In this document: one piece after another, positions 4,013 to 9,351 of the stretch
How the letters are laid out: each line of letters opens with the position of its first letter
Position numbering within the stretch: position 1 is the first letter of the stretch
Origin: Stylophora pistillata
Taxonomy: Eukaryota
Length of the DNA: 64,000 nt
Reading direction: 5' to 3'
Assembly: GCF_002571385.2 (NCBI RefSeq)
Contig: NW_019218098.1
Location: 15,619-79,618 of the forward strand
The notes under the pieces: model-generated
Told to the model about the DNA's origin: nothing
The model's input: the letters and a program-made list of their open reading frames with translations, nothing else
The model's database searches: none
Program-made: the position numbers and the translations under genes

Positions 4013-7000
4013 TTACATAGTCAGCTCCTGGAAAAAGAAAAAAACAAAAATATTATTGGCAAAATGACCCACAAGCTGCATCTTTTAAAATAGCTGTGGG
4101 TGGAGGCTGTGATAACAGAAGATGAATCATAGTTAAGAATAAACGACACGCCAAAAAAACAAACAAAAAAAGGAAACACCCACTCAAGACCTCTATTGGC
4201 TTAGATAGACAATTTACTTGATCATCACTTGTCAAACTATTTAAACAATAGAGTGTTTCTGTCGAGGAACTATTGGCTGAAAGTTGCCCCGCGGAAATTT
4301 GATTTTCTTAAAACAAATATTTGCTCGAGAAGTGAAGCTTCGAGGGCATATATGCTAGTTTTAAGAACATCAAATTTCCAAGGGGCAACAATCAGAAAGA
4401 CAGTTCCGAGACAAACACTCTATTGTTTTTATTGTTCACCACTAAATTTTCTTCCGTGCCAACAGCTTGTCACAAATGTCAATAATTCGCAAACGTACAT
4501 TGGCTAAATAATACGTTATACCTGTCAGAATTGAAAAGTCACTGTTTTTCCGATCTGCCTGACTTCACGGCCATCAAACTATTCAAACCTTTTCACGGAT
4601 GAGTACTATCAATCCAGGTATTTTCCGCGGACAGGCACTATCCATCCGGGTATTTTTTGTGGGCAGGCACTATGGGCTGATAGTCTCTCTCCACGGATGA
4701 ACACTATCGTGTCACGTGATCAATTTGAACCAATAAGAACCAGAGAAAATTTAGTGGTGAACTACAATTGCTGATAGGAAGCAATATTCTCAGGTCTATC
4801 AAATTTAAGACAGAAGATACCAACATAGCAGATACCAACACTTACCATAATGGCATTGACAATATCATTTTCGTTATTTTTCAAAGCTTTGATAGCCTAA
4901 GAAGGGAAATAAAAAGGGAGAGCAGGTGAGTTATCACAGTTGATGTATGTGAAAAAGTTTTTCATCATATACGTGTTGTCTTGTACAGCCCCATATGCAC
5001 TTTTGTTAAAAAACCATTCGTCACCATTGACAGGACTGCCAGTTGAGAGAAGAATGGAAGAGAGACTATTCATTATGCAATGAAATGCTCTCTGACTGAA
5101 TTACATTGTACTGAGTGGGAAAATATTTGGCTTCAGGTTGTGACATACAGACTGAGTGCCCTTCCAATTATTCATAACACTCAATAACTGCCCTATCTTG
5201 TCATGTACTCTACAATAAAAAAAACAAACAAACAAACAAACAAACAAACATGTGAAGGAAAAACCTGTGATTTGGAAATCCACAATGTTAATTTTTTGTG
5301 GTAAAAATGAAACAAAAGATGACAGCATTAGGAACATCAACATCAAAACAAGACAAAACAAACCCACACACAACAGAATTATACAACTGGAATTAATTAG
5401 TAACATACCTTAGATCTGGAGACATTAGCCTGCTGCATAACTAGTTCAATATCTTTTTCCTCAACGGAGCTATCATTGATCTGCAATTGACAGAAGTTCA
5501 ATTTAAATTAAACCATGGGAAGTTGGTATTTTCATCTCCAATAATGAAAAGTTCACTTTAGTAACTGAAGAAAGAGAAAGGTAATCACATAAATTTTCGC
5601 TTGGTGAAAAACCCTTGAATAAGGGGTAAAAATTTTTTCCATTTAGATAGTTCTGCCATTGTGGAATAATAATATATAGATTTAGCCTAGCCTAAAAGCG
5701 GAGCTCCCAAATTCGTAATATTAATGATAACAAAAGATGTGCATTTGCCAAGACTCGCCTGAGACACCCCTCCCTTCATTTTGATAGTCTCCCCTACCCT
5801 ACCCGTGCAATCTGAAGGCACATACGTATGTATGTACACTCGGTCAGTCACGTGACAACCAAATGAAAAGAGGTTGACCATATTCCATGGGTATGGGGCT
5901 CTGCCCCATGCATGTGGGTGCCCTGCTATAAAGTAACAATTATGTGACAAGACTCCACCAACTCCCAAGGAAAGAGGCTTTTTAGCAATTAGAAGCTGTA
6001 AATTACACTCCGCATACAGTTATTAATTCATACTTTTACTAATGATTCACTAGAACAAATATTTATAAGAATACCAAATTACTATATACAAACTGAAGAG
6101 ACCAAAAATGTACAAATGTGATAGAAAGAGGTGATAATACACTAGAAAAAACAGAATACTAACAAGATCTGTATAGCAACTCCAGAAAAACACAAAAAAC
6201 AAACTTTACTAGATTTGAACCAGAAATGGATACAGCAAATGAACTTCCGTAACAATAAACAATTGTGTAATGCAACATCAACAACAAAAAAAACTACCAA
6301 CATTTGAACAACAGCACTAAACCAAACTAATTGTGATGAAATAACTAGAATAAAAAGCAAGCAAGAATTTAGAAAAATTTGCAGAAGAATCTACTTCTCG
6401 TGCTTACAGAAGCTAAATAGTGAGAATTCCTGCTTACCTCTTCTTCCTCAGATTCCTCTTCCGGTTCAATGGCAGCTACCTTTGCTTCTGGTATGACTGG
6501 GGCTGGTTGGGGAGCTTTGAATTTCTCAGCCGCCTAAAATATTTATAAGCATGAAAGAAGATCAACCCTGCTCAAATGTTAGCTCATACAGACAAAGTTG
6601 TACAGACATTAGGAAAACATTTCCAGACTATTCACTCCGTGTAATTTATTCCAGACTGTTCACTGAAAACCAATGATGACCAAAAATTGTTATGAAAATA
6701 TTCTTGAGTTAGTTGTCTTAACAGACAGAAAGGACCAAACCATTGATTTTAAAAACGCAAAGATACATCTGTTAGTAATGAAAGTAAAGGTTTCACTTCA
6801 TTGTTTAATTAAGCTTTAAAATTATTTTTCATTTGTAGTGTAACAAAAGAATTTGAAACTGGGATTATGAATAAAGTTGTCACCTGAACTTGGGCTTGCT
6901 GGCTCAAATCCTCAATCTGCAGAGAAAATGGAATGTTTGTTAGATATGAAAACAAAAGCAGTCATAAAAATTCACATACAAAAAGTAGTGGTGTGCCCTC

Positions 7001-9351
7001 AGATCTCATAATCTTTAGATCAGTGGACCACATCTAGCCTAACCATCCAGCCATGTGTGTGTGTGTGGGTGTTACTCAACACAGAAATGAAGGAATGTAT
7101 GCAAGTTTACACAAAATCACAACAATACAAACATAAGATGAGGCTTTCAAGTTAGGCAGATTCTCCTCACCATAAGGCATCTTTATCGTCACTGGGCACA
7201 CATGAACAAAATCAAGGCACTTATGTTTTGAAAGGCACTAATGTAACTGACACTGCACAACAAGTTGGATGCAAAGATGAGGGTACTGTACTCTTTCTCT
7301 TCTATTTATGACTTTTAATTTGACCTTTCAGTTTTTTCCATGAGCTATAGGTGTTTTCTCCAAAAAAAATTGGAAAATAATTATTTGTATAACAGCCGTT
7401 TTCTTTTGTTTCCCTGAACAAAATTTCCCTTATTTTTGGTCTAACATTCCCTAGCAGACCTGTCACTAGATTCACCAGCTCTACAGCCAAGAAAAAGTTG
7501 AGACTTCATTATGAGCAAGATGCAACCCTGGATTAGGCACAACTAAAGAGCAACTGCTGGAACTGAAACCTCTTATACTGTAGGATAAAATCACCTGAAC
7601 TAAGAAGGAATTTGTTGACAACATACCTTTGCCTCACCAAAAACTATGTATGTATCTGAGGCTGGGCTTTTGTAAACATCCGGCTTGTTTATCACAAATA
7701 GTATATTTTTGGATTTTCGTATCGTTACTCTGGTTACTCCAGAAACTGTTTTAAGTCCAATTTTCGACAGTGCTTTTCTGGCTTTCTTTTCTCCTCTGCT
7801 CTGTTTTGCTTTACTGACAGGTTCCTCGGTCAATCCAGCTGCAGCAGCAACTTCACTTGAAATTGCTGGTTGGCCAGCATCTCCCTCTTCAAGCTCAGGT
7901 AACTCATCATCACTGTCACTTTCAGTTCCTGAAATAACTGGAGTGTAAAAACATCATGCAGGGTTTTCTTCATTCAGATATGGAAACAGGAGTTTTGTCA
8001 ACACACAAAACCTTGACATTAATATCCATATTCAACGCTTCACAATGTTCTCTCTGCATTTTATATGGTAATAGTAAGGAGAATTTGTTTGTAAATCAAG
8101 AGCTTCTTAACCCTTTCATCCTAATATCAGTAAGCATATTCTCCAGTGTTCTCTATTCATTTCCTATGATACTGAAAAGGAGAATGTGTGTGCCAGTCAC
8201 AAGCTCCTAGAATTGGTGATTATTTTCTTTATTCTCATGACCTTTACGTTTGAATTAAGGCTGAAAGTGCAAGCCATTCAGTTGTCAGTGATTAAGGAGT
8301 TAAATTGGTGACCTTTCCCTTCATTCTCAAAACCTTTACATTTGATTCAAGGGTAATACTGAGAAGTGAAATTACAAGCCAGTCATTATTGGGTTTACAG
8401 GCTTAACCCTTCATTTCCCAGAAGTGATTGACATGTTATTTCTCCTTATAATATCTATACATTATCCAGCAAACAGGTCTTGAGAATACTCAAACTTATC
8501 AAGTAGGAGTTGTTATCCTGATCTAACACAAAATTCTTGTAACTAATTTCAAAGGAAATATGTTGCAGTTAGAGGGGAGAATTAAATATCAGATCTTGGG
8601 GGTTTGAGGTTTAAATAACAGGAACCTTTTTGCCACAGGTCAGTGTTTATGGACACCATGTGCCTATCTCAGTCAGCGCAAAGAGAAGAAAATCAAAGTA
8701 TTCCCTCATTTCCCCAACAGATATATTATAAGGCAATATAATAAGATTTTGCACATGGATGCTCTTTATCATATTCCTGTCTAAACATATGTGGTCCCTT
8801 CAACGGTGTTAAAGTGAAAAAATAGAACCTTACTTTCACGCAATTTTCAGAATAGGCATAAAAGGCAAGTCAGATTATGTCAGGTTTCCCTGAGGAAAGC
8901 TTCTAAAGGGGTGAGGCACATTATAAGACTGAGAAGCTAAATTTACACGAATCTTGGTACACACGTAGCTTGCACGTGTGTACTATGGTGCCATGTTGGA
9001 TTTACGGTAAACTGCCAACCATCTGCGGTTAAATCGCCTGATTCGCCAACCAAAAATGTAGTAATTGCAAAATTACCGGTCGATTTCAGGTGTGGTAAAA
9101 CAAGGTGTTGATGATGCTATTATAAACTTTTCTCATGTCAAAGTGTCTATGCTTCTACAAGCCATGAGTTGCGTCACTGTCAAAAATACTGGGGTGGAAA
9201 ATTTGCTTACTGACTGAGTGCAATTCGCCTCATAATTTGAATTTAAACAAACCATACGATAAATTTTTATCTAACTTAACGTAAAGAAACTTTTCTTACC
9301 TTCTGCATTTGCCTCTTCTTCGGCTGGAGGGTTCTCTACCGCAGGAGTCAT
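4013..9351 (-). CDS. NACA: Nascent polypeptide-associated complex alpha subunit, ~206 aa; exons 9300-9351, 7627-7928, 6884-6916, 6438-6533, 5409-5480, 4846-4896, 4013-4027
   Basis: [14 protein letters not shown]...[46 protein letters not shown] and the UBA-like end [38 protein letters not shown]. All junctions GT-AG; total 621 nt. Confidence 0.97.
4240..4770. repeat. Dispersed repeat in the last NACA intron
   Basis: Begins aaacaatagagtgtttctgtcgaggaacta, with an internal inverted copy (gacaaacactctattgttt, ~4410-4428) and short tandem gcactatc units. Confidence 0.5.
6992..7200 (-). ncRNA. SNORD97: Intronic box C/D RNA, SNORD97/SCARNA97-like (guide for Cm34 of elongator tRNA-Met)
   Basis: 7-bp terminal stem TGTGCCC/GGGCACA, C box GTGACGA (7186-7192), D box CTGA (6999-7002). 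The guide AGATTATGAGA (7004-7014) is complementary to the tRNA-Met anticodon arm UCUCAUAAUCU. It lies ~75-80 nt from the 3' splice site on the host strand. Confidence 0.85.

Follow-up and report, generated by a model that had tools for sequence, protein, structure and literature searches.

The minus strand of the window (the 64,000-nt stretch of Stylophora pistillata DNA analyzed here) carries a box C/D RNA gene at positions 6992-7200, homologous to SNORD97/SCARNA97 and located within an intron of NACA. Judged from its sequence, the element is very probably the coral orthologue of a single ancestral SNORD97/SCARNA97 gene and is predicted to guide 2'-O-methylation at the wobble cytidine (Cm34) of elongator tRNA-Met. 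The family has already been described, and the coral gene is an unannotated addition to it with the biology expected of a member. Knock-outs of human SNORD97 and SCARNA97 abolish Cm34 of tRNA-Met, and homologues have been reported from insects, plants and Ciona (PMC6601510). Archaeal homologues and PARIS2 duplexes have also been described, as have plant and archaeal duplexes extended by introns (PMC10576143). With members already known from vertebrates, insects, plants, Ciona and archaea, the family was to be expected in a cnidarian; the literature passages and searches consulted named no cnidarian member.

The gene is about 207-209 nt long, with limits set by the sequence, the match to Rfam family RF01291 and the orthologues. 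The 5' and 3' ends pair in a 7-bp terminal stem, UGUGCCC (7194-7200) with GGGCACA (6992-6998). The C box, GUGACGA (7186-7192), has one mismatch to the RUGAUGA consensus and is followed by the D' spacer UAAAGAUGCCUUAUG (7171-7185), whose core is AAGAUGCCUUAU, and by a D'-like box, GUGA (7167-7170). A long internal stem (5' arm 7142-7166, 3' arm 7025-7052) begins directly after the D'-like box and closes the insert, and the C'-like box, UGAUCU (7017-7022), lies directly 3' of this stem. The full spacer of the D guide, AAAGAUUAUGAGAU (7003-7016), and the D box CUGA (6999-7002) complete the element. The stem, C box, D box and guide that the initial annotation had placed at 6992-7200 were confirmed to the base by the sequence check, and the 11-nt guide named there, AGAUUAUGAGA (7014-7004), falls inside the D guide spacer. 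The insert was put at about 120 nt and proved to be larger, the D'-to-C' interval being 144 nt.

NACA was searched exon by exon, and nine further assemblies, coral or cnidarian-like (L034, L046, L047/48, L049, L050, L051, L052, L053 and L054), hold the element in the same intron, which lies between the exons encoding GEAK and IEDLSQQ. The pattern used for metagenomes carried the coral CUGA D box to avoid drawing human SNORD97, and no retrieved contig was taken for human. The NACA exon of the window is 99% identical to a NACA that its source names Pocillopora verrucosa, and other exons were nearest to proteins named by their sources as Montipora (L053, 98%) and Oculina, so that both main stony-coral clades are covered. 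The alignment comprised 11 copies, namely that of the window and 10 further ones from nine assemblies. The copies share 61-80% identity in the snoRNA vs. about 45-55% in the flanking intron, making the element a conserved island in an intron that is otherwise unalignable. The segment GAUUAUGAGA of the D guide and the D' core do not vary in the 11 copies, all of which have a UGA(C/U)GA C box; the UGA of the D'-like box and the UGAnC of the C'-like box are likewise invariant. The D box is CUGA in 10 of the 11, the exception being CCGA in L054. The conservation of boxes and guide that had been anticipated among coral NACA introns was therefore borne out save for this one D box. The terminal stem keeps an unchanged GCCC/GGGC core and shows covariation at its two outer pairs (11 sequences). 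The internal stem was paired in 89% of alignment cells, with 12 pairs changed on both sides; none of 500 shuffles was as good, and slid controls were 29-44% paired.

The D guide matches the tRNA that the family is known to modify. Elongator tRNA-Met genes with a matching anticodon arm were found in the coral genome, and positions U31-U41 form 11 Watson-Crick pairs with the D guide, to which G30-U adds a further pair. G7007, five nucleotides upstream of the D box, faces C34, as the D+5 rule requires, and this upholds the complementarity proposed for this guide in the host's own tRNA. The duplex of the guide with the mature tRNA had a predicted energy of -16.7 kcal/mol; shuffled guides averaged -6.3 kcal/mol and none of 2000 was as good. 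Most coral tRNA-Met copies contain an intron of 12-14 nt at 37/38, and the first bases of the intron, AUCU or GUCU, are a copy of the 3' anticodon stem. Because of this copy, the guide can pair equally well with the unspliced precursor (-15.5 to -16.5 kcal/mol for four intact intron-bearing pre-tRNA-Met), and this equal pairing makes pre-tRNA-Met a likely substrate of the coral guide.

The D' element raises the question of whether methylation of tRNA-Met is the main function of the RNA in cnidarians. The element could be a genuine box C/D RNA that is chiefly engaged in another task, such as D'-guided methylation elsewhere, a chaperone role or processing, with the match of the D guide being inherited and secondary. 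Consistent with such a task, the D' core and the D guide are equally invariant across the 11 copies, and the D' core has no significant complementarity to tRNA-Met: the D' spacer paired with elongator tRNA-Met at -8.7 kcal/mol, a value not above chance (p about 0.26 against shuffles). The coral D' element also departs at two positions from that of the vertebrate type, as represented by the Rfam SNORD97 consensus and by L045. The human D' guide pairs near G22 of tRNA-Met, and D97 and D133 contact several tRNAs (PMC10576143). Searches for another target, covering the first 30 genomic matches of the D' 12-mer and a partly masked rDNA stretch, gave none. The exact D' 12-mer had 57 matches in the genome vs. 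30 for the control, and there was no overlap with a tRNA among the first 30 of the 57. One cluster of D' 12-mer matches is a 74-nt satellite. Near the rRNA matches on contig C250, in a stretch that is about 60% N and so samples partly masked rDNA, the best match to D' was weaker than typical shuffles. A 13-bp match to the D guide on the same stretch falls in non-rRNA sequence and was set aside as chance. Against a different main function stand the invariance of the D guide from human to coral, the genomic presence of its target arm, in which C34 falls exactly at D+5, and the tRNA introns that preserve the pairing. We consider another main function unlikely and favor guidance of Cm34.

The host intron is 710 nt long (6917-7626, minus strand), has GT and AG ends and was defined by the spliced joint 6916/7627 in RNA contigs. 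The upstream exon (7627-7935) encodes the NAC domain (Pfam PF01849, E 1.1e-24) and ends in YIVFGEAK. Downstream lies a 34-nt mini-exon (6883-6916), delimited by the joints 6532/6883 and 6916/7627. The 3' end of the RNA is 76 nt from the start of this exon at 6916, in agreement with the 75-80 nt estimated beforehand, and the snoRNA is in sense orientation within the intron. The RNA contigs came from four runs of four studies, of which three were recorded as polyA RNA-seq and the fourth (X1) is only a guess as RNA. NACA was highly expressed and correctly spliced, with joint 6916/7627 and contigs containing the intron each seen in four of four runs. Intron depth was about 1% of exon depth, a value from contigs of mostly polyA libraries in which RNA ends are not readable, and pre-mRNA could be the source of this signal.

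These data bear on a second alternative, in which the sequence is a conserved, structured intron element that acts on NACA pre-mRNA, for example in splicing or stability, without release of a stable snoRNP. Such an element would be consistent with its fixation in one and the same intron of NACA in many corals and with RNA contigs that showed only intron-retaining forms and no discrete RNA. However, homologues recovered elsewhere have the same boxes and guide in unrelated hosts (SNF2/CHD-type, RRP12 and CCT genes), the conserved parts are exactly the boxes and antisense element that define a snoRNP, and the distance from the element to the 3' splice site ranges from 73 to 595 nt among copies. 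A role confined to the pre-mRNA thus appears very unlikely, and an intron-encoded guide RNA remains the preferred reading. The NACA intron put forward in the initial annotation was found as described, and the different host gene pointed out there is ordinary, as hosts differ widely among lineages.

Assignment to the family draws on the Rfam model, the boxes, the stem and the guide with C34 at D+5. The SNORD97 model (RF01291), over its positions 1-142, aligned to 6993-7199 and scored 28.7 bits (E 0.01 for 801 nt against all 4227 Rfam families; E 0.09 for 7 kb). Five orthologues were also aligned over model positions 1-142 at the ends of the element, with 28-34 bits. Running this model, the check suggested beforehand, therefore gave an end-to-end alignment but a score below the gathering threshold of 45 bits, and the whole window searched against Rfam at gathering threshold had no matches. 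All invertebrate homologues recovered were under the RF01291 threshold, at 28-37 bits, indicating that the cut-off mirrors the vertebrate seed and still allows membership. The NACA-intron locus was not among the 48 candidates scored in a whole-genome SNORD97 covariance search. A 26-bit match to the model elsewhere in the genome (L001) is without guide or boxes and was rejected as noise. The 16-mer that spans guide and D box occurs once in the 398-Mb genome, and its reversed control had no matches. Three further matches to a relaxed pattern of guide and D box were without C box or stem; these are chance, and the gene is thus single-copy. A chance likeness to a box C/D RNA, for which the sub-threshold score and the noise match to the same model might speak, is effectively refuted by the conservation, the covariation, the unique guide plus D box and the exact complementarity to the tRNA.

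The insert contains 34% U, 21% G and 21% C, and UG/GU dinucleotides account for 0.21-0.39 of it among copies vs. 0.15 in the surrounding intron. The apical domain includes a UG-rich segment (7109-7135), defined by sequence and dinucleotide content, and a (CA)7 run (7054-7067), a lineage-specific microsatellite expansion represented in other copies by at most 6 nt of CA. A localisation hairpin formed by a UG-rich arm and a (CA)n arm had been suggested. The minimum-energy fold of this RNA's sequence does pair UG with CA, by Watson-Crick pairs, although the (CA)7 run is confined to one lineage and the register is not fixed by covariation: pairing of the (CA)7-UG segment is 90% conserved, yet 76-80% is retained when the partner is slid by two columns. 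The fold of the whole RNA was no more stable than shuffles (z -0.74). The suggested version of a localisation hairpin is not supported, and a localisation role for the UG/(CA) arm is speculation. What is conserved is a hairpin, about 140 nt long and UG-rich at its top, that separates D' from C', and by analogy with vertebrate scaRNAs a function in nuclear sub-localisation is a possibility. The vertebrate intronic box C/D scaRNAs U90 and mgU2-47, which have a G.U/U.G wobble stem, similarly have a long, UG/GU-enriched apical hairpin between D' and C', and Cajal-body targeting in human cells needs 4-6 uninterrupted UG repeats topping the hairpin (PMC4041459). Unlike in those RNAs, the UG runs of the window's RNA reach only 5 nt (2.5 repeats) and are partnered by CA in Watson-Crick pairs. 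The wobble-stem signal's run of at least 4-6 consecutive UG/GU repeats is missing from it, and among the copies long GU repeats occur in L050 only.

Human SNORD97, a nucleolar RNA from an EIF4G2 intron (PMC6601510), has in common with the coral RNA the box C/D architecture, the UGCCC/GGGCA stem, the intronic sense location, an identical D guide core, GAUUAUGAGAU, and the target C34, as well as GUCC before the C' box and a GGA(C) stem after the D' box. The coral RNA differs in being about 65 nt longer through a larger internal domain, in its canonical CUGA D box vs. AUGA in the Rfam consensus, in its UGACGA C box, and in its D' spacer, host and Rfam score. Human SCARNA97 (SNORD133), a Cajal-body-specific RNA of 216 nt from a LARP4 intron whose long insert carries localisation information, shares the guide, the target and a long internal insert with the coral RNA. 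The human insert, however, consists of 93 nt of pyrimidine-rich sequence that lacks GU repeats (PMC6601510), and the coral insert is rich in U and G and forms a covarying hairpin. A SCARNA97-type, pyrimidine-dense tract of about 90 nt is absent from the coral insert (55% pyrimidine, 21% G); pyrimidine-rich inserts were seen in the non-cnidarian homologues L036, L042, L043 and L045. The insect, plant and Ciona homologues and the archaeal tRNA-Met guide sRNAs resemble the coral RNA in having one gene per genome and an invariant D guide, while location in a NACA intron and the form of the D' element are particular to the cnidarian group. In plants and archaea the introns of the target tRNA-Met join the guide duplex (PMC6601510; PMC10576143), and the coral arrangement is the same.

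Established box C/D snoRNP biology and the human knock-outs suggest how the coral RNA would act. The RNA would be excised from the spliced NACA intron and would assemble with SNU13, NOP56, NOP58 and fibrillarin on the C/D and C'/D' motifs. Base-pairing between the 12-nt element that precedes the D box and the elongator tRNA-Met(CAU) anticodon arm would then allow fibrillarin to 2'-O-methylate C34. A fuller reading can be offered tentatively, with the joint claim being rather doubtful as a whole: the cnidarian RNA may have been locked in one NACA intron before the main coral clades split, may act on pre-tRNA-Met whose introns are selected for the duplex, and may combine two modules peculiar to its lineage, a UG-rich Cajal-body hairpin and an invariant D' guide for a second target.

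Annotation that relies on the Rfam threshold overlooks all the invertebrate members recovered here, and the intron of NACA that separates the GEAK and IEDLSQQ exons provides a simple synteny marker for finding the gene in other cnidarians. Current views stand, and nothing is overturned. At the level of the gene, a snoRNA-guided system for Cm34 of tRNA-Met is now placed in Cnidaria, closing a gap that lay between the records from plants, archaea and bilaterians. The coral tRNA-Met introns keep guide pairing over the exon-intron junction and give independent comparative support to the published idea that pre-tRNA is the substrate and that tRNA introns aid modification. If true, action on pre-tRNA-Met in cnidarians would for the first time extend to an animal a mechanism proposed in plants and archaea.

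The main reading of the element on the minus strand at positions 6992-7200, a SNORD97-type guide RNA for C34 of elongator tRNA-Met in an intron of NACA, was supported by the host gene, the target pairing, conservation and covarying stems. Every feature listed for it in the initial annotation was found in place by direct check of the minus-strand sequence. A 7-bp terminal stem (7200-7194 with 6998-6992) encloses the C box GUGACGA (7192-7186), a 15-nt D' spacer (7185-7171), a D'-like box GUGA (7170-7167), a C'-like box UGAUCU (7022-7017), the 14-nt D guide spacer AAAGAUUAUGAGAU (7016-7003) and a canonical D box, CUGA (7002-6999), with an internal domain of 144 nt between the D' and C' boxes.

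The open reading frames flanking the element encode NACA, as determined by an exon-by-exon search by reference. The NAC domain (Pfam E 1.1e-24) is encoded by the upstream exon, which ends in ...YIVFGEAK, the exon after the host intron starts with IEDLSQQAQ, and the NACA exon of the window is 99% identical to a protein named Pocillopora verrucosa NACA by its source. RNA contigs from four sequencing runs of four studies, labeled either with a single coral organism or as coral metagenome, were mapped on positions 6500-7900; three of the runs are recorded as polyA RNA-seq and one (X1) was only guessed to be RNA. The joint 6916/7627 was detected in all four runs and defines a minus-strand GT..AG intron of 710 nt, whose 3' splice site is 76 nt from the 3' end of the element; the same runs also yielded the joint 6532/6883, one border of a 34-nt mini-exon. 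Unspliced contigs of the host intron were detected in all four runs at a depth of 15-39, compared to about 78-5,800 for spliced contigs at the same junction, and the neighboring 350-nt intron was present in only two runs. In run X10, the contig bearing the snoRNA had a depth of 39 vs. 8 for the upstream part of the intron. These depths, from contigs that show neither RNA ends nor RNA levels, are compatible with a stable intron product.

Elongator tRNA-Met(CAU) is encoded in the coral genome by one gene without an intron (L020) and by a family of copies (L056-L064) that are interrupted at position 37/38 by an intron of 12-14 nt; the anticodon arm of every mature product reads GUCAG-UCUCAUAA-UCUGA. 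The proposed complementarity of the guide to the anticodon arm of the host's own tRNA was confirmed: U31-U41 of the tRNA are matched to the D guide by 11 Watson-Crick pairs, with a G30-U pair in addition, and C34 lies opposite G7007 (D+5, five nucleotides upstream of the D box). The duplex had a free energy of -16.7 kcal/mol compared to a mean of -6.3 kcal/mol for shuffled guides, none of which (0 of 2000) was as good. The 16-mer of guide and D box occurs once in the coral genome; three extra sites returned by a relaxed guide and D box pattern lacked boxes and stems and were chance matches.

In the four intact-looking intron-bearing genes, the first intron bases, AUCU in three and GUCU in one, copy positions 38-41, which allows the guide to pair with the precursor as with the mature tRNA. 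Guide duplexes with these four precursors ranged from -15.5 to -16.5 kcal/mol and were longer by one pair in L057 and L060; pairing across the intron was less well kept in degenerate tRNA-Met copies. The intron position of the coral genes is as in plants and archaea, for which Zhang et al. (PMC10576143) describe the same arrangement of guide and tRNA intron and argue that pre-tRNAs are the substrates. The intron-bearing genes, located at C254:929-1010, C45:556962-557043, C289:194750-194833 and C516:2133-2214 of the coral genome (G000) and at neighboring sites (L056-L064), are clustered with tRNA-Lys(UUU) and tRNA-Ile(GAU) genes. The sole intronless copy (L020:1470-1543; G000:C45:776264-776337) has U at positions 1 and 72, a mismatch atop the acceptor stem, and is possibly not the main gene but a retro-copy or variant. 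ARAGORN also called tRNA-Met(CAU) at L003:1470-1541, at L019:1470-1541 and at like sites on contigs C96 and C190. The acceptor and T stems of these sites pair poorly by eye and the sites may be tRNA-derived repeats; their loop is still able to pair with 10 nt of the guide.

Conservation was evaluated with the 20 nt at the 3' end of the coral RNA as a query against JGI metagenome contigs, with its CUGA D box kept to avoid human SNORD97. Nine of the 12 loci detected had the 5' stem and C box at the correct distance, eight by pattern and one (L036, with the wobble variant UGCUC as 5' stem) by eye; L037 and L041 were truncated by the contig end, and L039 was a chance bacterial match. L034 closely resembled the window, and its copy of the element is in the corresponding NACA intron, flanked by the same pair of exons. 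With the NACA exon as protein query, eight further genomic loci were obtained, all eight with the element in that intron; the comparison of NACA introns called for in the initial annotation showed boxes and guide to be kept in relatives. The NACA of L053 was Montipora-like (98% identity) and that of L034 was closest to Montipora (94%); the nearest named proteins for L046 and L051 were from Oculina and Pocillopora, and NACA of L050 and L054 was more distant from named proteins. In L050, a further copy lies some 480 nt 5' of the exon with the NAC domain and seems to occupy the intron before it; the inserts of both copies (L050:3353-3559 and L050:5469-5654) contain long GU repeats of up to 25 nt. 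Identity between copies was 61-80% for the RNA vs. about 45-55% for the flanking intron, and the distance to the 3' splice site ranged from 73 to 595 nt. All 11 aligned copies (the window and 10 further copies in nine assemblies) share, without change, GCCC/GGGC, UGA(C/U)GA, AAGAUGCCUUAU with NUGA next to it on the 3' side, UGA in the C' box and GAUUAUGAGA; in the D box, C(U/C)GA, all bases but the second are invariant. The D box of L054:4800-4977 is CCGA rather than CUGA, with guide and stems intact.

No Rfam family reached its gathering score in the entire window. With permissive filters, the SNORD97 model (RF01291) suggested earlier as a check aligned over all 142 of its positions at exactly 6993-7199, the ends of the element, although at 28.7 bits, below the gathering score (E 0.01 on 801 nt and 0.09 on 7 kb), and this was the sole match across the complete NACA gene region. 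Beyond boxes and guide, element and model share the UGCCC/GGGCA stem, an AAAGA-GC-UUAU motif 3' of the C box and GUCC 5' of the C' box. When the whole genome was searched with this model, only 48 of about 94,000 candidates were scored, and the unrelated L001 (26 bits), which lacks the guide, was the only locus returned. The covariance score alone would therefore not pick out the element in 398 Mb, and the case for it stands on the host gene, target, conservation and structure tests. All invertebrate homologues recovered here scored 28-37 bits, below the Rfam cut-off, which explains why the gene was left unannotated. A snoZ30-like match (22 bits, E 0.1) at 7269-7347 on the plus strand, antisense to NACA in the same intron, is probably noise.

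RNAalifold and pair counting supported two stems, the terminal stem and a long internal stem that begins directly 3' of the D' box and stops directly 5' of the C' box. Stem cells were paired in 89% of cases compared to 29-44% in slid controls, 12 pairs were changed on both sides, and 0 of 500 shuffles was as good; the covarying stems thus indicate a box C/D RNA layout with a large apical hairpin. The hairpin top was UG-rich in every copy, and the two short apical helices predicted for the stony-coral subset join AUGU.UGU with GCA.UACAU and UGUGU with ACACA. Their pairing was 90% conserved vs. 76-80% after the partners were slid by two columns, so the register of these helices is not fixed. The localization hairpin between UG and (CA)n arms proposed in the initial annotation is physically possible in the window but is not conserved: the (CA)7 run was restricted to the window copy (other copies, at most 6 nt), the register was not fixed, and the whole-RNA fold was no better than shuffles (z -0.74). 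Cajal-body targeting in human cells needs four to six uninterrupted UG repeats atop the apical hairpin (PMC4041459), whereas UG runs in the window copy reach only 2.5 repeats and long GU repeats were detected in L050 only. Human SCARNA97 uses a pyrimidine-rich tract in place of UG repeats (PMC6601510); such tracts were present in L036, L042, L043 and L045 but absent from corals. By analogy, the coral insert may have a role in localization.

The invariance of the D' element suggests that it has a function. The human D' guide pairs with tRNA-Met near G22 (PMC10576143). In the coral, two positions of this element are different, and the strongest duplex it forms with tRNA-Met, five pairs involving the D loop, did not exceed chance (p about 0.26). 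None of the first 30 of 57 genome matches to the exact 12-mer D' target was in a tRNA, and no target was found in the readable part of the C250 stretch around the rRNA matches, about 60% of which is masked. That stretch (G000:C250:34000-53999; L100 and L101; about 60% N) has 18S and 28S matches about 13 kb apart, and immediately beyond the 3' end of the partial 18S match the sequence does not resemble rRNA. The 12-mer complementary to the D' element occurs in a tandem satellite of 74-nt period (L071; G000:C32:1226644-1226803), in which ARAGORN detected no tRNA.

In humans, Cm34 of elongator tRNA-Met, which shields the tRNA from angiogenin, is made jointly by nucleolar SNORD97 from an EIF4G2 intron and Cajal-body SCARNA97 from a LARP4 intron, and insects, plants and Ciona have single homologues, as shown by Vitali and Kiss (PMC6601510); archaeal homologues were added by Zhang et al. 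(PMC10576143). A cnidarian member was thus expected by phylogenetic bracketing, and our literature search found no paper naming one. Hosts vary freely by lineage and include an SNF2/CHD-type helicase (L036, and L045 by eye), RRP12 (L043), a CCT chaperonin (L038) and, in the cnidarian set, NACA. L036, L038, L043 and L045 are intronic, non-cnidarian homologues on metagenome contigs; L042 and L043 also bear mir-279-like hairpins, which suggests a protostome origin. Our analysis supports the element as an added member of the known SNORD97/SCARNA97 family, for which a stable RNA, fibrillarin binding and Cm34 formation are predicted and a specific localization is possible. What is modestly new is the conserved NACA host intron, the UG-rich internal hairpin, which covaries and is accompanied by an invariant D' element, and the intron-bearing tRNA-Met genes that preserve the guide duplex.
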